Assembly: GCF_006345805.1 (NCBI RefSeq)
Contig: NW_021824986.1
Span: 1 to 17,007, forward strand
Length of the DNA: 17,007 bases
Direction: 5' to 3'
DNA from: Octopus sinensis
Lineage: Eukaryota
Shown here: positions 55 through 17,007 of the stretch, one piece after another
How positions within the stretch are numbered: the stretch's first letter is position 1
Layout: every line of letters begins with the position of its first letter
Program-made: the position numbers and the translations under genes
Notes under the pieces: model-generated
Told to the model about the DNA's origin: nothing
The model's input: the letters and a program-made list of their open reading frames with translations, nothing else
The model's database searches: none

Positions 55-283
55 TTAGTGAGATTTCTGATCTTGTTTGCTCAAAATAATTTTACTTATA
101 TCAGGCTCTATGTTCGACAAAGCTACTCGCATATCATCTTGTACCCGTAGTCTATTTCTATATTTTGTTTTTAGAAAAGTCAGACACGACATCGCCATTT
201 CACAGTGATAAGTAGTGGGGAATGCAAGTATTGATTCCAATGCAGTTTTACTCAAAATGGGGAATTCTTTCGCCATCTGACAC
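55..283 (-). pseudogene. hAT (Buster-type) transposase, last exon (C-terminal dimerisation domain)
   Basis: (W)CQMAKEFPILSKTALESILAFPTTYHCEMAMS...KTKYRNRL...KQDQKSH* matches the FPTTYLCE..FS / KNKYRNRL / ..SH* ending of Buster-family transposases. It is preceded by a ttgttag acceptor ending at 284. Confidence 0.88.
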
Positions 284-459
284 CTAACAATAAAAAATAA
301 TTGTGACCGGTTTTATTTTGGACCAGGTTTTATTTTGGACCGACATGCTCAGATTATAATAAAATTATATTTGTTTTAAATTTCTCCACTAAAAAAAAGA
401 TAAAAATATAAAATTAATAAAAAACCTTAATATTTATTTAATTAATTAACGCGTGCATA

Positions 460-848
460 ATGGTTCTAGTGGATTTAACCAGAGAAGAATTGAAAATAAT
501 CAGTGATATTAAGAATAGTATATTAATTGATTCCAATATGGACAAAAGAGAAAAGTATCGCCTTAAAAAATCGCAAATTTTTTTAATTTTGTTGACGAAA
601 AGGCATATTTTGTAAAGAATAACAAAAATCTTCGTTTTTTTGTTCGGAAGAGAGAGAACTTAAGCTAAAAACTATCAAAGTAAGCTAATATATTGAATTT
701 AAAGCTATTACATAATGAAAATCATTTTGGGCGTGATCTGATGTTAAGCCTATTAAGAAATAAAATTTACTGCGTCAAACGTTCTGAAATCTTCGATGTA
801 ATTAAATCATGTGTTGAGTGCCTTTTTGTTACTAATAAGAGAACATAA
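460..848 (+). pseudogene. Truncated Ginger-like integrase: N-terminal region plus HHCC zinc-binding motif, no catalytic core
   Basis: MVLVDLTREEL...DKREKYRLKK...LRFFCSEERELKLKTIK | 25-nt GT-AG intron 680-704 | LLHNENHFGRDLM...KSCVEC...KRT*. It needs two single-base corrections in homopolymer runs (~570, ~640) and is clearly homologous to the ORF at 15954-16241. Confidence 0.8.
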
Positions 849-891
849 CTTTAACTTAAATTAGGATTTTAGTGTTAGGGTTAAAATTTTG

Positions 892-1458
892 TTTAGGGTT
901 AAGGTTAAAATGTTTAGCGTTAAGGAGAAAATGTTTAGGGTTAGGGTTAAAAATTTGTTTAGGGTTAAGGTTAAAATTTTTAGGGTTAGGGTTAAAATGT
1001 TTAGGGTTAAGGAGAAAATGTTTAGCGTTAAGGAGAAAATGTTTAGGGTTAAGGAGAAAATGTTTAGCGTTAAGGAGAAAATGTTTAGGGTTAGGGTTAA
1101 AATGTTTAGGGTTAAGGAGAAAATGTTTAGGGTTAGGGTTAAAAATTTGTTTAGGGTTAAGGTTAAAATTTTTAGGGTTAGGGTTAAAATGTTTAGGGTT
1201 AGGGTTAAAAAATTGTTTAGGGTTAAGGTTAAAATGTTTAGGGTTAGGGTTAAAATGTTTAGGGTTAGGGTTAAAAAATTGTTTAGGGTTAAGGTTAAAA
1301 TGTTTAAGGTTAGGGTTAAAAATTTGTTTAGGGTTAAGGTTAAAATTTTTAGGGTTAGGGTTAAAATGTTTAGGGTTAGGGTTAAAAAATTGTTTAGGGT
1401 TAAGGTTAAAATGTTTAGGGTTAAGGAGAAAATGTTTAGGGTTAGGGTTGAAATTTTG
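892..1458 (+). repeat. Telomere-derived minisatellite: 26 units of 21 or 24 nt, consensus TTTAGGGTTAGGGTTAAAATG
   Basis: Manual parsing gives 19 x 21-nt and 7 x 24-nt units (567 bp). Degenerate TTAGGG-like flanks extend roughly 860-1620. Confidence 0.95.
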
Positions 1459-1927
1459 TTAGTTGAGATTAAGATTTTTATAATTAAAATTAAATTAAGT
1501 TTTTTATCGTTTGGACAACTATTAAAAATAGGGGTTTTAAATTAAATTGAAAATTAGGGTGTTTTAGAATTAGGATTTTGGGTGTTAGGGCTATTATAGA
1601 ATGTATATGTGTTAGGGTTATATTTTTAAAATTTTTAATTAATAGAATTATATTTAGTTTTTAATTTTTTTAGAATGGAAGACCAATTTTTAAATAATAT
1701 CGTAACGGCAACGCTGTAATTATCAAATTTGTTGATTGGTTGGGTTGTGCATACTTCCATTTTTTAAAAAACTAAATGAAATCAAGAAAAAACTATACAA
1801 AAGTATAATTAACATTAACTAATATATTTTTAGTGGAATAAAATTTTTATTATTGATTTTTTTTCTCGGTCCAAAATAAAACCTGGTCCAAAAAAAAACC
1901 TGTGACAATAATTATTAATGAGAATAC

Positions 1928-2070
1928 CAAAAATCTAATAATGAAGTACATTTGAAAATAATCTGAGCAGACTGATTACATTGAAGTTCAATCAAGCTCT
2001 GCTGAAAATTGAGTTCCTGATATTTTTTAAATGAGGTCACGAAAGGTTGAACGATCCAGTTTGGAATTGT
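1928..2070 (-). pseudogene. hAT (Buster-type) transposase, penultimate exon fragment
   Basis: TIPNWIVQPF...QSLIELQCNQSAQIIFKCTSLLDFW matches the WI.NPF...LIEL..D...F....L..FW segment. It ends at a GT donor (1927) in phase with 55-283. Confidence 0.82.
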
Positions 2071-2260
2071 TATTTTTCGAAAATTCCTGGGGACCACTAA
2101 AAATTTTCTGGGGACCACGATTGAGAACCGCTTGATTAATTTCAATGTTTTTGATTTATACTTAATTGTACAATTAGTTTTAACTTTAATATATTTTTAT
2201 TTTTCGAAAATTCCTAGGGACCACTAAAAATTTTCTGGGGACCACGGTTGAGAACCGCTG
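2071..2260. repeat. Tandemly duplicated 63-64 bp hAT terminal sequence
   Basis: 2071-2134 and 2198-2260 are near-identical (tatttttcgaaaattcct...ggggaccac..ttgagaaccgct). Confidence 0.85.
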
Positions 2261-2564
2261 ACTTAGATTCTAATAAGAAAACAGAGACAAGACATATAGA
2301 GAAATTAACACGCAAAAATGTTCAAAAAATACTAGATCCTCCACCTTGCTTCATTCAAGACCCTGCATTACTTGATTCCGTCAACAAGCTGATTTATCTG
2401 AACAATGAAGCAATAGCTAAATCAAAGCTAAATACGAGGCAATCTTTATTGACAGATTTCTATTAATTTTACTGTTTCACTTTTTCGTTATAAGTAAGTT
2501 TAATGACTTTTTCAATATAACGGTCTCCCCTCTGTCTGTTCCCTGGCTTAAAGGGGTTTGACTG
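2261..2564 (+). mobile_element. 3' remnant of a pogo/Tigger-like transposon
   Basis: The reading frame ends in QSLLTDFY* (2440-2466), a PIP-box consensus typical of pogo/Tigger transposase C-termini. It is followed by a terminus reading CAGTCAAACCCC on the minus strand from 2564. The flank is TT rather than TA. Confidence 0.55.
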
Positions 2565-2789: not shown

Positions 2790-3556
2790 TAGGACACCTT
2801 AGATGTGGCGAGCCATCCGCGCTACCCATTCTATTGTGTTACACACTTGTCAAAATTGGCCTAGATTTAAAACCTGTTGTTTAAATTACTTTTCATTCTT
2901 ATTTTTAAATTCTTTACTGTTTTCAAAAAATATAAAATAAAACTTAGGTCCAAAATTATAAAATAAAGCTTTTCAAATAGAAGAAATTAGATATGCTTTC
3001 TTCGAATTAGTAGCTCAGGCAAAGCAAAATTTGAAATAAATATCGATTACGTCAAAAATATACTTGATACCACGATTCAGACAAGGGACTCAAATCTATC
3101 ATATTTATCTGGTAACCTTCTCTTGGAGCTTTTGCTTTAATCTGTATCAAAGAAATATGAGCTTTTAATGGCTGACATTGAGCACAGTCTCTAGATTCAG
3201 CACATACTTTTTGGATAATTGATTTCTTTATACTAAAAAAATAATTATATCAGACTATTCTTTCATTTTGTTTACTTCATAATGCGTTTTCAAAAGTGAA
3301 TTTTAACACATAGATTTCATAGTTTCCAATTTATTTTTAGCAATTACAATTTTTTGTTCCATAATTGGTTTTAACTCAGAACCTTTTAGTAAAAAACATT
3401 TTTTGTTATTTAGAAATCTTGTCTTTTTCATTTCAGTTAAACTTCCATCAATCGTGTCGCTTTCAAATAAGAAACTATGTTTTTGTACTATATAATAATT
3501 AATACTAAAATTTTAAGCAGCATCTTTGACAAAACAAAAACATCTGAATATCATAA
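2790..3556 (-). pseudogene. Decayed Ginger/TDD-like integrase related to element B (14355-15948)
   Basis: With frameshifts it reads YKNIVSYLK..TIDGSLTEMKKTRFL...CAQCQPLKAHISLIQIKAKAPREGYQINMIDLS...KYIFDVIDIY...LFYNFGP...ENSKEFKN, colinear with element B (QPLKTK...AKEPRER YQVDLVDL...VIDIY...GPP...DNGTEF). No TIRs were found. Confidence 0.7.
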
Positions 3557-3659
3557 TCTAAATATGGGTTAAAATACACTGCGAATTCGAATTGGAAAAA
3601 ATAGAGTAGGTGGAAACCCTCTTTTTGGGAAAAACCTTGCTTTTGGGAAAATATTTTTA

Positions 3660-3860
3660 ACAAAAATATCAGGAAACAGTCACTGCAGCTTCGCCCCGAA
3701 CTGAAACCACATTGCTGCGTGAGCAGAACGTTCTTCTCTTCGGTCAGGAAATCGAGGCGCTTTGCCATGATTTTTTCCATTAACCTTGAGATGGTTGGGA
3801 TAAGGCTTATTGGAGGGTAGCTACTAGCTCGATTCGTCGGCTTTCCAGGTTTCTTGATCA
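3660..3860 (-). mobile_element. Non-LTR retrotransposon reverse transcriptase fragment (Jockey/I-like, RT domains 0-1)
   Basis: IKKPGKPTNRASSYPPISLIPTISRLMEKIMAKRL...QQCGFSSGRSCSD matches the PKPGK..P.SYRPISL...K..E...Q.GFR..RS motif. Confidence 0.82.
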
Positions 3861-3861
3861 A

Positions 3862-4009
3862 GAAATATTTTCCCAGAGGTGAGGCACTATATTTCCTACT
3901 GTATGATAATCATTTTTTACTATAGAGCACTATGTAACCATTGTATGGGAAGCAGAAAAACTGTTTGTCATTTGTCAACCTAGGGCAGTAAAATTCTCAA
4001 TGTCAGAAG
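3862..4009 (+). mobile_element. R4/Dong-like non-LTR fragment (zinc-knuckle region)
   Basis: About 125 bp is nearly identical to 6210-6341. It translates with frameshifts as EALYFLL.D...ALCNHCM...KTVCH.ST. Confidence 0.65.
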
Positions 4010-4690: not shown

Positions 4691-5542
4691 TTATTCATAA
4701 CGTCTAAATCCAAAATGTAGGTGATCGTCTTTGTATGCATCATAAAAATCGTATTTCATTTGGGTCGACAAGTTCTTAAAATATTTAAAAACTAGATCAG
4801 TTGCGTTTGTTTGATGGGAAATTTCCTGGAGCCATGATCTCCCATTTTCTGAAATTCCATAAACCTTGATCAAATCATTGATAAATTCATCAAGTTTGTC
4901 AAGCAATATGATTTTGTAGTCGATATATTGTGGGGAACATAAATCAGTCATTGAGGTCCAGTGTTCGTTCAATTTGGCTTTTTTTCGAGATTGAATTATT
5001 AAATAACCGACAAATTGTTCGAACGTTACAAATTTTTCAGGATTACCAGTTATGGCTTTTCGAACATCCTGAACAAAGTAAGGTGACTTCAAAGTAATCT
5101 TTTTGAATCGGATGAATTTGTCTAAGTATGCGGAAACTATACGTTCGACTGGATGTCTCACTATTAAAATTTTTTGAACGCCTTCCATCTCGTTTATTGA
5201 ATGTATTTTAGGTTTTATTTGATAATTCGCATTTATAAATGGGAGATCGTGAATTTCACTTTTTCTGAATTTATAACAATTTGTGATGTTGTTCTCAGCA
5301 CAGTAAGTTATTACGAACCATTTATACATTGTTGTTGACCCAACTTTAGGGATTTTACAATAGAATAATTTTTGTTTATCGATAAAGTAAAAATGAGTGT
5401 TTTCTTTGAAAGATTCATTATTTGTGGGATTTCTAAATGTTTTTACATTCACGTCGCATTCGAATTTTGAAAACAAAATGAAGAAAAACAACAACAGGAG
5501 TAAAATACATGTTTTGTATAAACAATGCTTTCGTGTCAGCAT
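4691..5542 (-). CDS. Golgi-type carbohydrate sulfotransferase (Sulfotransfer_2 / HNK-1ST, CHST8-14 family), 283 aa, intronless
   Basis: Intact ORF with an N-terminal type II membrane anchor (CILLLLLFFFILF), 5'-PAPS motif YCKIPKVGSTT, 3'-PAPS motif IVRHPVERIVSAY, the HW..M..LC segment and C-terminal Y..D...FGF. Confidence 0.92.
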   Translation of the reverse strand: MLTRKHCLYKTCILLLLLFFFILFSKFECDVNVKTFRNPTNNESFKENTHFYFIDKQKLFYCKIPKVGSTTMYKWFVITYCAENNITNCYKFRKSEIHDLPFINANYQIKPKIHSINEMEGVQKILIVRHPVERIVSAYLDKFIRFKKITLKSPYFVQDVRKAITGNPEKFVTFEQFVGYLIIQSRKKAKLNEHWTSMTDLCSPQYIDYKIILLDKLDEFINDLIKVYGISENGRSWLQEISHQTNATDLVFKYFKNLSTQMKYDFYDAYKDDHLHFGFRRYE

Positions 5543-6094: not shown

Positions 6095-6570
6095 TTGAAG
6101 AAATCACGAATTTCAATTTCTGATTCAGCCAAATGTCTAAACGATCAGAATGTTGATGTAAAAACTTCAAAGGGGTGGATTTGGAAAAGGAATGTTTCCT
6201 CAGAAGTAAGCACTATATTGCCTACTGTAAGATAAGTATTTTTACTTTTAACCAATAGAGCACTATGTAACCATTGTATGTGAAGCAGAAAAACTGTTTG
6301 TCATTTTTCAACCCAGGGCAGTAAAATCCTCAAGTCAGAAGGCATAACGAAGTCTTGAGATGTATTTATTTGCACCTATGTAGGAATTATGGAATCAGCA
6401 AAGTAACAAAATTGAAAGGGTACTCAGTCTATCAATCCTATCAACACAAAATGTTGAATTACGAGAATTCAGTGTAACAAGCCTGATATATTTGTGTATG
6501 ACAAAATAAGAAACGAAATTATCATCATAAAAGTGGGAGTCACTTCCCAGGACCACCTGAAGCAGCAGCA
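6095..6570 (+). mobile_element. R4/Dong-like non-LTR retrotransposon fragment: CCHC knuckle plus restriction-like endonuclease, decayed
   Basis: ...ALYCLL*DK...LCNHCM..KTVCH.ST...RRHNEVLRCIYLHLCRNYGISK...NKPDIFVYDKIRNEIIIIKVGVTSQD matches the CxxC..H / RHN / PD..(D/E)xG motifs of REL-clade elements. Confidence 0.8.
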
Positions 6571-6956: not shown

Positions 6957-9900
6957 CTATTTATCAGGCAGTTCAAATGGCTCAGGTGGCTGTGGCTCAC
7001 CGTCTTCCTCAGTAGTCGAAATCTTGGTCGCGGGGACTACACAATCAATCCAATCAAAATACTCGGCATAAACTCAACATAACACTCATCTCCATCAGGA
7101 TCAGTGTCCTTGGCAATAAATATATATCCTCCAGCAGTCACATTCTTCACGAGGTTATATCGAGTATCACTCGCAGATATATACTCTCTCTGCCAATACA
7201 CTCCCCAACTCACCTGCTGTGGTAAAACTCGTGCTGGGTTCTTTAAAAGACTAAACCCCTCACTAGACTCGTCCATCTTTGTTTCCTCCTCAACTGTAGT
7301 ACCCACTTCGGTCTCTGACATTACATTAAAGAGAAACCACCTTTCTGGACTTGATCCACATTCTCCTTTGACAGCCCCTTCGCCTGTTTGTTAGAATAAC
7401 ACATTACTTGGAGTCTCTCAATCTTACGACGTTGGAAACGAGAACCCACTGACCTGGAAGCACTAGACTTGCCTCGAGTCTTCTTTTCCACTACGAGAGG
7501 AATGTAGGCAAATTTGGAAGGTGGTATGTTGGACAGAATATTGACTGCCGGCATCTACCAATATATCCCTCTCTAATGAACCTTCAAGTCCTCGTTGAGT
7601 ATGACTACTCCTGTTGGGGAGAAGGCCAATGACAGAGTGAGAGAGAGTGGAAACCAGTACCAGAACTGCTGGAACACCAACAACCCCACAATAGCCTTCA
7701 TATTCTCAAGTCCACTTTCATTTTCTAGTGCAATTGTGACATTCCCACTCCCTGTGACTCTTTATTCACAATTATAACCCGCATAGGCTATTCCTAGCCC
7801 AATTATTGCTCCAAACTTATTAACCACTCCTTCATGCTTGTCTGATATAATCTGAGTAACCATTTTTGTATATTTTTTCTATATTTATACATATAAACAG
7901 TACATGTGGAGAACTTTCCCCAGTTTCTTCAATTAATACCATTCCCCCCGCAATGAAGGCAGCCTGTCTTACATAACTGGCCTTATCATGCCACAACGAC
8001 TCCAATATTTTACATACAAACTAAAAATAAACATATTAGTAGACAAACCTGGTCGCCCGTGCCAGCATAGGCAATTCCCAAGGCCATAGCTGATCCATAC
8101 CGAACATGAGGATTATAACTATCCACCAATGACTTAACTATGCTCAAACAGACTTTAGGAACTCTACATTGAATCAACACATATACCTATAAAGGACAAA
8201 TCCGAGGGATATTGCTGCTGCTCGTCTCACATCATCACTCACATCAGTGACAATCATTTTGAGTAGTTTGCGGACTGCTGTGTCATCCCCAGTGCCACAA
8301 TAGGCCATTGCCAGTGCATAAATCCCCATCCATCGATGAATAGGGTCTTGGTGGGCAACCAATACTTTAATGTGCTCATCTGCCTCACTCCCTCTTCCAT
8401 ATAATATCAGTGCCACTCCAACAGCAATCCCTCGTAGTGTCTTTTCGTGCTTATTTACTGCTGCAATCTAAAAAAGTGAGACTATTACAATACAGAGAGC
8501 AGTGTGGTTATTATATACTCATTCTGAGTCCCAACTAGTATCATTCCTACTGAAATAGCAGCTGCTTCCCCCACGACTGAATCAGAGTGGATTGGTCCAA
8601 GCAGTGACTCCACAACTTCCTCATTCCCACTACCCAATCCAGCCAAACCAATAGCCAATGCTGCTCCATGTCGCACAGTCTATTTATATCAACACATTCT
8701 CACAGTTGACTGATTTTCATTAGAATATTTACACAGATAATCCATAATATCACCACCCCGTGCACAATATATGAATCCTGTCAATCATTGTTATAAACTA
8801 CCCAACCCAGTGAGTAAAGTCCTCCCCCAATCGCATACTGAGAGGTACTGACACTATCCTTGGGCAAATAGGCGTCAAGGACAGTCATTGCATTGCCTTC
8901 ATTGCTCTAAATGATGTCAACCCTCCTAATAAACCTTATGAATAACCCCAAGAGAACCAATAGCAATAAAACGAGACCAATTACTAAATCGAGACACCCA
9001 ATCACTCAAATGTCTAATAATCAGTACATAATAACCCCACCTGAACATATAATCACATGTCGAGCCATAATTAATAAATGAATTTGCTATTATAATGGCA
9101 GTGTTACACACCGAGTCAATTGAACGGACCTATGCTATACAAAATAATATACCTGTGCGAATTGAAGTAGTGTTTGTGATTCATCACGACTGTTGTGTGC
9201 AAGAAACTGCAACTGAAACTTGGCTGGGAGAGAACCATCAAGTATTTTACATATTCTATCAATTGGGCTATTTTCTACCAATTCTTGCACTAATTTGAAC
9301 TCAATACCATCAACAGTGTTCTTCAACTTGTCAACCACAGCAGCAGAGGTCTTGTAGGTTACACAATCGTAGAGATCAAAGGCCAACTGATAAGCCAAGG
9401 CAATATTATTCTATTAATTTACTCACAAAGTCACAAACATGTTCAGAAGTCAAAGAAGCCAACAGATTAGCAAGAAATTCAATATCGTTCAATTTAACTG
9501 CACACTTGAATTAATTTGAATAAAAATTCAAAACTTTAAACACCAGAAAATAATTCTTTCTAGAAGATGCTAGAAGGATCTCAATGAATATTCTCAACGA
9601 GCGTTTAAAAAACTCTGCATCATCACATGTAGTTAATAAAATATGATAAACATAATCAAATGGCATTTCCTACATTACAAAATAATTAAAAAATAAATAC
9701 TACACTGTCATCGTAGTATTTAATAGCCATTTCCAGCATAGACAGATCCCGACACTCCACAGAAATGCCCAAAGCCTTCAAATATATTAAAAAATAAACA
9801 ACCTGATGCAATTTACAGTCAACAAGACACCGTTCAAACATAATATCAACCACCAACTTTAATTTAGACATTATTGGTGCAGTAGAGGCATCATTTCCAT

Positions 9901-10415
9901 CTTTTTTGAGGGCAGAATACATGTCAATACATTTTCCTAAGGAAGGGATATTCAGTTCTGGCCTACCTGCTATGGTCTCGGAGTACAAAGAACATTCCCC
10001 CACATTAAACAAGTCCCCAGCCATGAAAGCATAGGAGACGGCATCATCAAAGGACTGGAGATGGTAGTGAATCTAAAGATCAAAGCAAATTGGTTACTTT
10101 TGAGCATATTAAAGCTGACAATTGTCGGTATGGAAAGTCTTGTAGGTCAGCTAGTTTTTCACTTTTATTAACTTTATTTAAAGATACATTTCTGTGATAG
10201 ATACTGCCATTTCGTACCAGAATGTGCTAGAAAGTGAGTCTAATTTTTGTAGGGCGATTTTCTGTGGATTATTAAGTGTTAACTAAGGTTGAATTGATAC
10301 CTTCAGTTCGTAGTCATCTTCTTCTAATAATGATAATATTCCTTCTATAAAAGAATTAGTAAATGATAATTATTTAAATATTAAATATCTAATCACAACC
10401 AGAAGTGGATAACAT
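6957..10415 (-). CDS. PSMD1: 26S proteasome regulatory subunit RPN2 (PSMD1), about 925 aa, 25 exons
   Basis: Manual splicing of 24 GT-AG introns (55,39,26,25,30,27,34,30,28,23,27,28,29,24,26,23,28,25,27,27,24,26,24,26 nt) gives a 2778-nt frame. It runs from [16 protein letters not shown] through the PC repeats ([23 protein letters not shown]) and FWYWFPL, NPARVLP to [13 protein letters not shown]. Confidence 0.95.
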
Positions 10416-10714: not shown

Positions 10715-11330
10715 ATGGCTGATTTTTGTGTAAAGCCTTTAAATCCATTAAAAAGTAATTTTTATAGACATTTAAATTTTAGGTGCCAAAGCTCGTTCGA
10801 ATTACTGCCGAGTTCATTTCAAAGTACCTTTTTTTCCTCATCCCAGAATACCTACGAAGTAGCCAGATCTCTCAAACGAATGGACCTCAAAAGAGCAGAG
10901 TCCTTCCTCAATAATGTCATTGAACATAAGGAAATTGTCCCCTTCTATCGATACAAGTACGGGGTTGGAAGAAAGGCCCAAGTAATGGAAATGTGACTAA
11001 GCAAACAGTGCAAAGGAAAGGGGACATCTCAGGGACGGTGGCCTGAAAAGAGTGTCAAATTTATCCAAAATGTGTTGGAAAATGCCAAACAAAATGCAAA
11101 TTCGAATGTTTTTATGTTTATAAGAGTAGATTAGTCCCTCGATATGAATCGGCTGTACATTGAACATATCGCAATCAATAAGGCACCAAAGAATAGGCGA
11201 AGAGTGTATAGGGCACATGGGAGAATTAATCGTATCTTTATTATTACTTAATTTAGCCTTCAATTCTCATCCTTGCCATATTCAAATTATTCTCTCAGAG
11301 AGGCCTATTAATGTCCCCGATAAACTTTAA
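10715..11330 (+). CDS. RPL17: 60S ribosomal protein L17 (uL22), 161 aa, 6 exons
   Basis: Introns 10755-10782 (28 nt), 10824-10846 (23), 10982-11008 (27), 11108-11134 (27) and 11232-11256 (25) give a 486-nt frame containing [22 protein letters not shown] and [21 protein letters not shown]. Confidence 0.97.
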
Positions 11331-13762
11331 ATTCTTTAGTTCTTTGTCGTTATTTTTATCCTGTTCCTAATTTTTTGTCTTATTTAAATTTGTGTGGATT
11401 CTAAAATATGCATTTTTTATTAGATTTTAAATTTGGGAGGTTCTGGCTTGTTTAAGTAACTTAACTTTCACCACATCAGGGGAAAAGATACTGATTAAAA
11501 ACCAAAGGAAGAATCCTTTAGTGAATAACTTATTTCCAGTTTATTTTATACATCCATTCGGGATGGCTTTCTGAAATTACGAATCAGAATCATGAACAAA
11601 TATATCTATGTTATTTTTATTACAAATAGTACAACTGCTGAAGTTATTATTTGCTTTGTGGGCATTTATGTGTTGACTTCTATGCTTGACTTATATAAAT
11701 AAAAGTATTTATTGGCTTTGGAAATTAAACTGTGAATCTGTTCTGCAGAAAGAAATATATAGAATTAATAAACACAGTCTATATAAATTGACAGTCAAAC
11801 ATATTTTCCTAAAACTGGTAAAGGCAACCAGACCAAACGTGGCTAAATCAAGATTACATAAAAACGTACAGTGTCCGACAAAATAAATTGGATTTGCTTT
11901 GATTTGACTTTATTCTTAAATACTAACTGTAGATTATAATGTTGATTGACTGCTACTTCGAGATAAATAATAATTGCATTGTATTGACAATTCATGTATA
12001 TTCCAGACTAACGAAATGTAGTTGCTTTATTTTCGATTGTTTCAAAAATATAAAAACTTACTTTCAACAATAAATCTCTCAAAAACAATTCCATAACTCA
12101 GAGAACACCCACAAAGTGAAGCCAAATAAAACAAGTCTCATTTAGTTTTTGCTACTTAATCGGCGAAATGAAATCAAAAATCGTAACGATAAAAATATTA
12201 TCCAAAGAGAAAATTTTATGTTGTAAATTCAGAAAATTTTATGTTGTAAATTCTAAGGACAACCTGTAAATCGAAAAAAGCCCAGTTTGCCAATATTAAG
12301 AGAACACATTTTTGTGGAAATATATAGTTAATAAAATTTTTTTAATATTATTGATTATTGAGAAAACAAATAAAGTTACGAATAGGCATGTTAATAAAAT
12401 TTATTTTAATACTCGTTTTTAAAATTTATTAGACTGATCAATTAAAGTGTTCAATTTAGGAATTGTATACTTTACTATAAAATGTGATTTTTTTTAGCAT
12501 ATTTAATTTTTTTTTCAATTTAGAATAATACGTACAAAATGTCAATTTCAGAAAAATGTTAAATGTGATTTAAGAACTCGACTCTCTTTCCATCTGTTAT
12601 AAACTTTCAACCAGCACTGTGGTCTATCTATTTAATATATTCTAAATCTATAATGCATTATTGGGAAATTTCAAACTGCGCTGATCTGGATGTGATTAAA
12701 CTTTCAGTGGGCAGCTTAAGAGATCTAAAAACAGGCATAAAAGTATAACGCTATATTATTTTTATTCCAGCAGATAACAAACTGCATCTATTTAATGAGT
12801 TGTCATGTACATGTTCTTCTAAATCAGGGGTCGGTAGGATTTTTGTCTTCGCGCGCCAAAATTTTATTTTTGTATGCCAAACGAGAAAAAATCCTTATCG
12901 GTCGCAAAAATAACGATATATAAGAATCCTCTTGGCTGAGACAGAGAATCTCATTTCGTTTGCAATCGTGAACGGTAACGCACAAATTATCTGTTTTGCT
13001 TAAAACGAACCTTTCCAGGGCAACGTTTGCAGATTTATTAGTTAGAAATGATTACATAGAAGTGAATTTATTTTAGTCATTATCTGACTAGTTGCTAAAT
13101 GTAATATATTTTTAAGATTTGAATTGGTCATCCTCGTTCTTAGACAATTTTTACATTATTCATTTGGAGAATAACTGATGACATAAAAATGTGATTCCAA
13201 ATATACAAGCCATTTTCTTTGCATTGTCGATTTTTGACACATACAAAATTTTCGTAGAAGCTCAAAATATCTAATTTGATTTAAGTATAGTGTCGCATTA
13301 AATTTCAAGTAATTCCATTTAATAAAAACCTGGTACTGTCTCAATTTAAACATCAAATGGAATTGAAAAAATGTTGAAAAGATTTTGAAAAACCTACAAA
13401 ATTATATGTCACCGGTTTTTGCTGGGACCCGGCATCTCCTTGGACCGCCCTAAAAATCGACTAAATCGCTTTATTTATATCTAAAATTATTAAATAGTTA
13501 AAGTTTAACCCTAAAATGCTGATAGATTCCAATTTACTGAAATTTCTTTCTTGTACAAAACCAGCATACTCCAACATTCGTTATTAACGCCGTTGAACTT
13601 TAAATATTTAATTGATATCTGGATTACCAGTCGAAAAAAATGAAAACTATTTATATTTTTTTTAAATAAAAATTAAATAAAAAAACACAAAAAGTATTAT
13701 TCCGTGATAAAAATACATTTTTATTTTTGTCGCGTGATAAAATCTCAACTTTATCCCAAAAG

Positions 13763-13991
13763 CTAACCTAACTTCGACCTTATCGCTAACCCTATCCCTC
13801 ACCTTATCCCTATCCCTAACCCCAACTTTATCCCTAACCTTATCCCTAACCCTAATCCCAACCTTATCCCTAACCCTAATCCCAACCTTATCCCTAACCT
13901 TATCCCTAACCTTATCATTATCCCTAACCCCAACCTTATCCCTAACTCTAACCTTATCCCTATCCCTAACCCCAACCTATCCTTAACCCTT
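13763..13991 (-). repeat. Telomere-like array: TTAGGG variants, mainly the 12-mer AGGGATAAGGTT interspersed with GGGTTA
   Basis: The plus strand is a run of CCCTAA/CCCTAT/CCTTAT hexamers. Confidence 0.92.
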
Positions 13992-14099
13992 ATTTTAGCA
14001 CAAGCCTTATTTTTTATAACAAAAACATTAATCAATTTTATAAAGTCTCGCAATATTTGTTCCTTTTACGACAATTCAAATCAAAATCAATTCATATTT

Positions 14100-14349
14100 C
14101 TCTGGCAATAACTTTATATTTTTTCGTATCAATTTGATCATATACTGGATATCATTTTTTCTCCTGCTTTCGTTAGAGTCTCGTATGTTGATAACAAATT
14201 TTTTGCAATATTTTTATCATCAGTTACTTCATTTTCAACAAATTGAATTTCAGCATCAGCATCTTCTCCAGAATTTGAATCATTCACTTCCGCATATCGG
14301 CTTGCAATATTTCAGAACGACTAACACCATAGATCCTTGTCTTCAGATG
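14100..14349 (-). pseudogene. 3' piece of the element A2 integrase gene (end of the HH region fused to an acidic C-terminal segment; DDE core absent)
   Basis: After removing element B and one ACTAA copy, the frame continues NHFERDRMIS|HLKTRIYGVSRSEILQ. It then shifts into RYAEVNDSNSGEDADAEIQFVENE...TLTKAGEKMI with no DxD/E core. Confidence 0.6.
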
Positions 14350-14354
14350 ACTAA

Positions 14355-15948
14355 TGTCACGCGCCATAAATGAAACGCGTGCCTAAAGTGAAACGCTGTG
14401 ACCTTGAATTTAACCTTCAATTAAGCTCTTGACAATTATCAAGTCAATATTAAAGATATTAAAGATGATTGCGCACTTTGAGATAATATTATCGAAATGA
14501 GATTTGCCAACATTGTAAAGGATGATCAGGAGTATAAGAATATTCTTGATTTTTAAAAATAATACAATACCAGAAGATTTTTCAAGACTAAAAAGATTTC
14601 GTTTTCTCAAAAAAAGTAGAATTTCGTAATCTGGAGGTACTATTAAATCTAATGATAGGTGTGCTATATTATAAACAATCTGATGAAACAAAATATTGGT
14701 AATTGCCTCAAATGATTTCGAATCCATGAAACTGCATTGTGAAAGGATTCATTCAATTTATCACTATGGATTTAATAAATGGGAGTATTGCAAAATAATT
14801 TTTGCATAATCAATCGAAACATAATTAGGGATGTAATATCATCATGCCACAAATGTCAGCGAAGTCAGCCCTTAAAGACAAAATATCCACTAGTCAACAT
14901 AGTAGCCAAAGAACCTCGAGAACGGTTCATTCAATAGCTTATTTTTTAGCTATCAGTTGATTTAGTCGATCTTTCGTTTTATGCAGATATAAATGATTCC
15001 TATAAATATCTTATGAATGTCATAGATATTTATTCAAATTTTGCTTTGCTAAAAAATAGAAATATAAAGAAGCAGTTACAGTTTCGGAATCATTGAAAAC
15101 TATATTTCTTTCCTATGGTCCACCAAAAATTCTGCAGTCTGACAACGGAACAGAATTTGTTAATTCAGAAATAACGTCATTATGTGAAGAATTTAAAATA
15201 ATTCATAAAAGGGGACGTCCAAGACATCCAGAATCACAGGGACAAGTGGAGCGTTGCAATCAAACCATTTGCAGATGGATTCAAAAAGAACTCACAGACA
15301 AACAGAAAAAATGGGTGGATGTGTTAGAAAAAATTGTATATCAGTACAATATTTCAATTCATTCTTCTATAAATATGTCACCATTTATGGCTTTTTTCCG
15401 AATAGAGGATATAACATTTCTTATTATATGATGATGAATTAATTGAAGAACATGAAAATCAACTATCATAAATGACAAATATCTTGAAAGAATGGAACGA
15501 AATTTTTCAAAAACATTGAAAGAAATTGCAATTGGAAATAATGTTTTGCTGAAAAAAGATTTTGATACAAATCAAAGGACGAAGAAGCGAAAATTAGAAT
15601 CTTTTTATCATCAACAAATCTTTACTGTTGAGATTTAATTTCAAATAATAGAGTTAAAATAAAAGATCAAGATGGAAATGAAAAAATAGTATTTAAATCA
15701 CAAGTTAAAAAATTTAGACAGGTAAATTTTCAGGTTAAAATATTTTTAATTTTTTGGTAATTTTAAAATGGCTAACCATTATTTAAATAAATTGTTAATC
15801 TTTCAAACGATAATAATAAAATTGGTTTCTCGGTTTTATTCCTGTTTTCATCAAAGGATTGTTAATTTTATTTTCGAGGTTTTTTGTGGTTTTCTCAAGG
15901 TTCACAGCGTTTCACTTTAGGCACGCGTTTCATCCATTGCGCGCGACA
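14355..15948 (+). mobile_element. Second Ginger/TDD-like family (element B), near full length, nested in A2
   Basis: 53/54-bp TIRs at 14355-14407 and 15895-15948, TGT...ACA ends, 5-bp TSD ACTAA at 14350-14354 and 15949-15953. Confidence 0.92.
14497..15760 (+). pseudogene. Gypsy-like (rve, KRBA2/SCAND3-type) integrase/transposase with HHCC and DDE core, frameshifted
   Basis: RIH..YHYG...CHKC, (R)YQVDLVDL, KILQSDNGTEF, GRPRHPESQGQVERCNQT, YN...H.S..MSPF. There are several frameshifts and two putative micro-introns (14637-14658, 22 nt; 14925-14949, 25 nt). Confidence 0.88.
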
Positions 15949-15953
15949 ACTAA

Positions 15954-16241
15954 TCATTCGATCTCTTTCAAAATGATTAGAATTATGCTCGGACTATTTT
16001 TAGAAAATACAACCAATACTTCAATCATTAGTAATTTTAGTTCTGCATCTTCAATACAAAAAAATCGTAGTTTTAGGCCATTTCTTCGTATATAAGCTTT
16101 TCCATCAGCAAAATAAAAGGTTTCTGCATGTTGTTTGACTTTATATCTCTCCTTCTTATCCAAAACTTCATCCAAATTCTGGAATTCTTTGTATTTTTTG
16201 ATTTTTGACAAGGTATCTCTAGTCAAAACCAGTAGACCCAT
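15954..16241 (-). pseudogene. 5' piece of the element A2 integrase gene
   Basis: MGLLVLTRDTL...LDKKERYKVKQHAETFYFADGKAY...LRFFCIEDAELKLLMIE | 26-nt intron 16019-15994 | SEHNSNHFERDRM. It aligns along its length with 460-848. Confidence 0.82.
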
Positions 16242-16537
16242 TTTTCACGTGGCAATTTAATTTTATAAAAGTAATATTCTTTTTTAAAAATAATTAATAA
16301 ATATGTGTTTATGACTGTTAATAAACTATTTTCAATATTTTTTATTTGAAAATACGCTTGCGGTCCCAGCAGATGCCGGGTCCCAGCAAAAACCGGTGAC
16401 ATTATATATAAGCATTTTACTCTTAAATCTATAAAACGTGATGAAAATTTCGATCTCAATTCCATAACTATGTTTGCATATTCCGGAACATCAGTCGGAT
16501 TCGTAGAAAGAAAAATTACACAACTTCAATTTAAAAA

Positions 16538-17007
16538 TTTTTTTTTTTTTTTTTTTAAAAAATTAAACTACTAAGTAAAGTCAACAAACTAATAAATTCT
16601 CCCAGCGAGACGGAGGGAACAGCTGTTGCCACGCATGACAGCCAGCAGGATCCTCTGAATGAGGAAAGTAAATTCCCTAGGGTCCTTGGACCGCGAAGAA
16701 CAAAGATGTCCCAATTTCTTTAGGGAAGTGAGGGTCCCGGAGCCAAAGACGCCGGAAGTCTCGACAACGATTGGCCAAAACCAAAAGTCATCCAACAAAG
16801 ACTGATATTTCCGGCACTTCGAAAGCTCAGCCTTATTAGCACGAGACCCAGCAAGAGAGGCCGATTCGTTGATGAAAGACTTTGAGAAGGTATCCACGCA
16901 AGTGGAATCCCAGACCAAAGGTCTCCCAGAATAAAACGAGAACAACGTAGAGCCGTCCGGCCTTTTCCCGTCACCACGGTCGAGACCCTTAGGCTCAAGG
17001 ACAGAAG
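16538..17007 (-). mobile_element. 3' end of a CRE/SLACS-like non-LTR retrotransposon (REL endonuclease, short 3' UTR, poly(A) tail)
   Basis: Open frame from the window edge: EPKGLDRGDGKRPDGSTL...LVWDSTCVDT...KCRKY...PIVVETSGVFG...QRILLAVMRGN, stop at 16589. A 19-nt T run at 16538-16556 is the poly(A) tail. The region is noticeably GC-richer than its flanks. Confidence 0.85.

Follow-up and report, generated by a model that had tools for sequence, protein, structure and literature searches.

A Ginger2-like transposon nested in a putative 33-nt intron of a relic hAT transposase sequence

The analysis presented here identifies a 1606-bp transposable element, A1, that is inserted between two coding pieces of the C-terminal region of a hAT transposase, within an A+T-rich segment of 33 nt for which the best reading is a true ultrashort intron passed down from an active parent element. 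When sequence comparison, homology, and the gene structure of the surrounding DNA are considered together, the intron status of the 33 nt, taken by itself, appears very likely, and the whole account, in which an ultrashort intron, a relic hAT copy, and a Ginger2-like insertion come together, is considered probable. The window referred to throughout is the entire stretch of 17,007 nt of DNA that was analyzed.

A1 extends from position 302 to 1907 of the plus strand and has TGT...ACA ends, as recognized both in the sequence and by a repeat finder. Its left end reads TGTGACCGGTTTTATTTTGGACCAGG... and its right end, as the reverse complement, reads TGTCACAGGTTTTTTTTTGGACCAGG.... On the plus strand, the left border (297-302) shows ...AAAAAATAAT followed directly by TGTGACCGGTTTTATTTTGGACCAGG..., and the right border (1907-1912) shows ...CCTGGTCCAAAAAAAAACCTGTGACA followed by ATAAT TATTAATG. 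A perfect 5-bp duplication, ATAAT, thereby flanks the element at 297-301 and 1908-1912, and according to the repeat finder, 290-343 and 1866-1919 form a pair that is 89% complementary. The bounds of A1 are placed at 302 and 1907 because the flank sequences and the paired inverted ends coincide there, and A1 is a true insertion with target duplication. A direct repeat of 7 nt, AATAATT, at 296-302 and 1907-1913 offers an alternative reading of the duplication that leaves the empty site unchanged; a 7-bp duplication was rejected, as the related elements A2 and I2 described below permit only 5 bp with TGT...ACA ends.

Scripted joining of the flanks, with A1 and one ATAAT removed, yields on the minus strand TTAGATTTTTG, GTATTCTCATTAATAATTATTTTTTATTGTTAG, and GTGTCAGATGGCG in direct succession. 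The middle segment, GTATTCTCATTAATAATTATTTTTTATTGTTAG, is 33 nt long and is bounded by GT (1927-1926) and AG (285-284). In the occupied site, the 5' part of this putative intron, gtattctcattaata, lies at 1913-1927 and the 3' part, tttttattgttag, at 284-296, both on the minus strand, and the copy of ATAAT at 297-301 is also part of it. An earlier note on this DNA had given A1 the same coordinates and letters, and the joined string matches it exactly; its further statements, that a GT-AG segment of 33 nt remains on the minus strand once A1 and one ATAAT are deleted, and that removal of this segment joins two stop-free pieces into LDFW/CQMAKEFP, were likewise reproduced, with residues 57 and 58 of the homolog P0001 abutting at the joint.

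The two coding pieces are assigned to a single hAT C-terminal region because they are collinear on one strand and their counterparts in homologs adjoin exactly. The upstream piece, WIVQPF...TSLLDFW (1928-2058, minus strand), has a stop-free frame and lies in a minus-strand ORF at 1915-2145; the downstream piece, CQMAKEFPIL...QDQKSH (55-283, minus strand, TAA stop at 57-55), is recognized by its stop-free ORF (55-276, from MAKEFPIL to the stop), its alignment to P0001, and Pfam Dimer_Tnp_hAT. With P0001 as tblastn query, residues 14-57 align to 2058..1927 and residues 58-132 to 282..58 with no residue gained or lost, the latter stretch at 59% identity (E=6e-26). The Trp codon at the joint is split after TG, with its final G supplied by position 283. 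The spliced product of 125 aa matches the C-terminal hAT dimerization domain, Dimer_Tnp_hAT (PF05699), at 22.1 bits against a cut-off of 21.4 bits, in a match that crosses the joint, whereas without splicing, and with the stops written as X, the score is 13.6 bits and the downstream piece alone is matched.

The earlier note would have been refuted had the two pieces come from different elements; their physical separation, though nothing else, speaks for two hAT elements that chanced to flank A1. Against it, the pieces lie on the same strand and in the same order, they correspond to consecutive residues (57, then 58) of the one homolog P0001, the distance between them is accounted for exactly by A1, the duplication, and the 33 nt, and their nucleotide identity to the related locus L001 is alike (0.57 and 0.60). 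On this comparison, descent from two elements is effectively refuted, and its probability would be negligible.

The same continuity is seen across the wider family. A word-indexed protein search returned three relatives in total, on contigs from another organism with a G+C content of ~37-39%, and two of these, P0001 and P0002 (51% and 48% identity), run gapless over the joint, with IEFWCCMLQEYPELAK aligned to LDFW/CQMAKEFPILSK. When 1.84 billion representatives were searched exhaustively, 2471 hAT-domain homologs were recovered, 654 of them at E<=1e-10; the motifs FW-x6-[YF]P..L..K and RNRL are common to the 2471. Among 151 joint-spanning homologs, drawn from the best 150 of the 2471 together with P0001 and P0002, the net indel between query positions 44 and 62 is zero in 135, and an additional 11 residues occur in none. 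In the ancestry of the domain, the 33 nt were therefore non-coding.

Removal of the 33 nt is the sole GT..AG solution, among lengths of 15-79 nt scanned, that opens the frame without loss of conserved residues. The segment is 85% A+T (GC 0.15), begins with GTA, and finishes with TAG, and its two in-frame TAA codons are the sole lesions across 119 aligned, otherwise open codons. As 33 is a multiple of 3, the hAT pieces are in frame even when unspliced.

It could be argued instead that a hAT fragment already dead acquired the 33 nt at random, as a small insertion or as filler DNA, with the GT and AG ends arising by coincidence. The hAT fragment is non-functional, with its catalytic domain missing, the closest relatives lack an intron there, the segment is of low complexity and A+T rich, and an in-frame length is expected by chance in one case of three, all of which would suit such an origin. 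Against this, the chance of finding both GT and AG at borders fixed by homology is only ~0.007 (three registers; dinucleotide frequencies of the window), the segment falls exactly on a residue boundary of the alignment with residues neither lost nor gained, the 119 codons hold no disabling lesion besides it, and its size, GTA start, and TAG end agree with the 19 introns of the neighboring PSMD1 gene. A filler origin is accordingly regarded as unlikely, though it keeps a modest share of the probability, and a genuine ultrashort intron remains the preferred reading of the segment.

The PSMD1 gene sets the local standard for intron size. This host gene (PSMD1/Rpn2; 6957..10024, minus strand) stands in the window without its first ~83 codons; removal of its 19 GT-AG introns, which measure 23-39 nt (median, 27 nt), yields an open frame of 848 aa. 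The spliced product matches rat and human PSMD1 in the PDB nearly end to end (E=1.6e-190), and the junctions are gapless. When close relatives of this PSMD1 were sought, the best identities were only ~50-60%. Mean GC is 0.30 in the introns versus 0.42 in the exons, and outside this gene the G+C content of the window is mostly 24-34% per 500 nt. At 33 nt, the hAT segment lies inside the PSMD1 range and slightly above its median, and many PSMD1 introns share its GTA start and TAG end. A 33-nt intron with these ends would thus be ordinary here, since the PSMD1 introns are alike. The "micro-intron" of the earlier note is consequently no peculiarity of the hAT gene, as every one of the PSMD1 introns next to it measures 23-39 nt.

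Introns this short point to a particular group of organisms. A ciliate origin, with Paramecium-type introns of 25 nt, was rejected: the frames of PSMD1, the sulfotransferase, and the hAT all use TAA and TAG as stops. Among animals, introns this short are reported only from myxobolid myxozoans and Dicyema japonicum (Hadjez et al., Mol Biol Evol 2026, PMC13644364), and the introns of the window share with theirs the GT-AG ends, the 5' signal reduced to GTA, and the length of 20-40 nt. The median of 27 nt for the PSMD1 introns equals that of Henneguya salminicola, and the G+C content of the window is near the 29.13% of that genome (PMC13644364); the genome of D. japonicum has 36.7% GC (PMC6736024). 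A myxobolid source is our best guess because the median intron length of 27 nt is combined with a low G+C content, that of D. japonicum being higher, and the genome sampled in the window is most likely that of a myxobolid myxozoan. Unlike the host-gene introns described for myxobolids and Dicyema (PMC13644364), the putative intron of 33 nt lies in coding sequence derived from a transposon.

The question of when such an intron could have arisen is informed by the nearest relatives. At the corresponding site, they read an uninterrupted TTTTGG/TGC within continuous ORFs of 399 and 495 nt, with the intron absent. Because these relatives (~50% identity, from another organism) read straight through, the intron would not be ancestral to the wider group; their continuity speaks to that wider group and, as judged from these sequences, not to absence of the intron from the hAT family of the window itself. 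The putative 33-nt intron is known from one copy. No second copy of the same family was found by word-indexed protein search, exact look-up in public assemblies, or a metagenome scan: exact-sequence look-up of the 73-aa hAT ORF in public assemblies returned no record, and metagenomes scanned for CQMAKEFP by means of a degenerate coding pattern yielded three matches, all due to chance and none of them hAT. It is conceivable, although we would put it no higher than a tentative suggestion that is more probably wrong than right, that the intron was gained in the transposase gene after the hAT lineage had entered an ultrashort-intron genome.

The hAT copy itself is a relic, probably an internally deleted and non-autonomous one in which a 5' terminus-like end has been joined to the last ~120 codons. 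These C-terminal codons, and nothing more, are present of the transposase, and no catalytic hAT parts were detected elsewhere in the window by tblastn, for which a Buster-like transposase of 566 residues and the other ORFs beside the relatives served as queries. Transposase homology begins at ~2058-2066, exactly at the start of the first of two direct, hAT-terminus-like repeats identified by the repeat finder (2066-2143 and 2193-2270, minus strand; 78 nt each, 90% alike). Read on the minus strand, these begin with CAGCGGTTCTCAACC and AAGCGGTTCTCAATC and contain GTGGTCCCC motifs, and by this resemblance the stretch 2066-2270 may represent the 5' terminus of the hAT element. The terminus-like motif was searched for in the loci of the relatives, L001 and L002, and was not found there. 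The 3' end of the hAT element, where the partner inverted repeat and the 8-bp target duplication of hAT elements would be sought, lies beyond position 1, outside the window. According to the earlier note, the hAT reading frame came through the insertion untouched. Both exons and the splice sites are indeed intact; as only the C-terminal ~120 codons exist and the catalytic part is absent, there was no working transposase gene to spare.

The same note had labeled the transposase "Buster," and this label is supported only indirectly. The full-length hAT homologs give weak DUF4371 or hAT-dimer matches only, and no relative of known structure came up when a full-length homolog was searched against the PDB. 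The ORFs directly upstream of P0001 and P0002 match Pfam families of FAM200-ZBED5 and GTF2IRD2-like type (PF27073, FAM200-ZBED5_RNase-like, and PF27046), and ZBED5 derives from Buster. The hAT remnant may thus be Buster-like, with the clade taken from the Pfam matches of ORFs that stand beside its relatives. L001 and L002 (ENA ERZ22157276), the nearest hAT relatives, come from a eukaryote-like assembly of ~37-39% GC and lie next to degenerate FAM200/ZBED5-like ORFs.

These matches also invite a different interpretation, in which the coding pieces are exons of a domesticated ZBED5/FAM200-like host gene and A1 entered an intron of that gene. Domesticated genes derived from Buster elements exist; the ORFs adjoining the relatives match FAM200-ZBED5 families; and host genes are expected to have introns. 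Yet tblastn finds no upstream exons of such a gene in the window, homology stops abruptly at a repeated sequence that resembles a hAT terminus, and the relatives L001 and L002 are multi-copy, degenerate ORFs of transposon-like character. A domesticated host gene is consequently considered improbable, and a deletion derivative of a hAT transposon is the reading retained here. Buster-clade hAT transposons have internal-deletion derivatives in an Ac/Ds-type relationship, and the window copy resembles these in its C-terminal dimerization domain and in a coding remnant that adjoins terminus-like sequence, while differing from a complete Buster hAT element in the missing catalytic domain.

A1 can be placed within the integrase-type DNA transposons from its ends, its target, and its coding remnants. 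Its terminal inverted repeats of ~42 nt occupy 302-343 (plus strand), with two GGACC motifs 17 nt apart, and 1866-1907 (minus strand). Between them lie 5' remnants of an integrase gene with stops and frameshifts, detected by Pfam and tblastx (460-848, plus strand), and an internal minisatellite of TTAGGG-like units with periods of 21, 45, and 66 nt (868-1454, plus strand). The integrase remnants include the remnant of an H2C2 zinc finger at 693-848 (Pfam Integrase_H2C2, 28.1 bits), which matches I2 by tblastx.

Two relatives of A1 are found in the window. A2 (13407-16401, minus strand) is in reverse orientation, with TGTCACCGGTTTTTGCTGGGACCCGG... at both ends and a duplication of TTATA at 13402-13406 and 16402-16406. 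With I2 removed from it, A2 is colinear with A1: tblastx places a remnant of the N-terminal ORF 159-161 nt from the end in both, and the two also share a zinc-finger remnant (HFGRD/HFERD), a TTAGGG-like minisatellite, and related ends. I2 (14355-15948, plus strand), with ends TGTCACGCGCC... and TGTCGCGCGCA... of the TGT...ACA type, is flanked by ACTAA at 14350-14354 and 15949-15953; it interrupts A2 inside the zinc-finger remnant and represents a second nested insertion involving the same superfamily. The minisatellite of A2 (13743-13995) has periods of 12, 36, and 60 nt and TTAGGG-like units, and the telomere-like minisatellites of A1 and A2 occupy the expected place of the integrase core. 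I2 retains an H2C2 finger and an rve core (49.5 bits) and is degenerate, with a frameshift and in-frame stops. Micro-introns were sought in its integrase and none were found, the breaks being a 1-nt frameshift and in-frame TAGs; as these have no GT-AG borders, I2 appears simply degenerate.

All three elements carry perfect 5-bp duplications (ATAAT, TTATA, and ACTAA), inverted-repeat arms of ~42-47 nt, and TGTNR termini (TGTGA/TGTCA in A1, TGTCA at both ends of A2, and TGTCA/TGTCG in I2). Ginger2 elements are known for TGTNR termini, duplications of 4 or 5 bp, A+T-rich targets, and a transposase with H2C2 and DDE domains (Bao, Kapitonov and Jurka 2010, PMC2836005; Kojima 2023, PMC10045372). A1 shares with the Ginger2/TDD group the termini, the terminal inverted repeats, and the A+T-rich target, its 5-bp duplication is that of TDD-4 and TDD-5, and the H2C2 finger and DDE core of the group have degenerate counterparts in the related I2. 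Some differences from the published group (PMC2836005; PMC10045372) are seen: the terminal inverted repeats of ~42 nt fall slightly short of the published 50-180 bp, the duplications reported for metazoan Ginger2 elements are of 4 bp rather than 5 bp, and A1 has no DDE domain. GingerRoot fits less well, with its 6-bp duplication, mostly TA..TA termini, and GC-rich target (PMC10045372), as do Ginger1, with its CCGG target (PMC2836005), and Polinton, with its 6-bp duplication and AG..TC ends. As the DDE domain is absent and an H2C2 remnant and a minisatellite are all that is left, A1 is classified from its sequence as a non-autonomous Ginger2-like element, which would have to be mobilized in trans.

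The remainder of the window contains further genes and repeats. An intronless ORF of 283 aa at 4691-5542 (minus strand) carries a Sulfotransfer_2 domain (Pfam E=2e-28) and resembles a carbohydrate sulfotransferase host gene; exact-sequence look-up of this ORF in public assemblies gave no record. An exon of ribosomal protein uL22/RPL17 is found at ~10840-10990 on the plus strand, with PDB matches down to E=1e-14. A reverse-transcriptase fragment at 3505-3861 on the minus strand (RVT_1, 25.9 bits, below cut-off) and an 88-nt repeat present in two copies of 91% identity (3913-4000 and 6246-6333) are probably further transposon debris. The G+C content rises to ~45% at 16500-17007, where a minus-strand ORF of 118 aa (16589-16945) has no Pfam match, and the window yielded no matches when scanned for Rfam families and tRNAs.

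When these observations are placed in order, a simple history can be proposed. In a genome whose normal spliceosomal introns measure 23-39 nt, the hAT parent element would have carried an intron of 33 nt. An internal deletion would then have produced a non-autonomous hAT copy in which terminus-like sequence abuts the last ~120 codons. Later, an integrase-type transposase acting in trans may have cut ATAAT, in the A+T-rich middle of the intron, with a stagger of 5 bp; the TGT...ACA ends of A1 would have been joined there, and repair of the gaps would have duplicated ATAAT. The putative intron would thereby have been lengthened by A1 from 33 to 1644 nt; neither exon was altered, nor were the intron stretches that border the splice sites (20 nt at the 5' site and 13 nt at the 3' site). 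The proposal of the earlier note that a micro-intron was turned into a 1.6-kb intron therefore stands as regards this lengthening, and is best qualified as regards the intron itself, to which the sequence gives the status of a strong candidate. Introns of more than 100 bp are present in ultrashort-intron genomes and carry no extra signals (PMC13644364). Given that the hAT copy has no catalytic part, nothing would now maintain the putative intron.

The kinds of event brought together here are all known ones, namely, an ultrashort intron type described recently (2026), a nested insertion, and a new Ginger2-like member. Transposons nested in introns are common in eukaryotic genomes, and the insertion of one transposon into a non-coding part of another is routine and matters little alone. 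The present case is like other nested intron insertions in its A+T-rich, non-coding target and in the sparing of exons and splice sites, and differs from the usual ones in the unusually small size of the target (33 nt) and in the ~50-fold lengthening.

What the window may add lies in the combination. It adds the record of a Ginger2-like family whose duplications are of 5 bp, in what is most likely an ultrashort-intron animal, and it contains a transposon gene that appears to bear the ultrashort intron type of its host. For the annotation of transposases in such genomes, this would mean that ORF-based callers split genes. Should the intron be confirmed and be absent from related elements, it would become a candidate for recent intron gain, and such a gain, if true, would provide a dated case in which a mobile element had recently acquired an ultrashort intron. 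The insertion of A1 would, on the same footing, represent a natural 50-fold lengthening that tests the tolerance of the spliceosome of these organisms for long introns.
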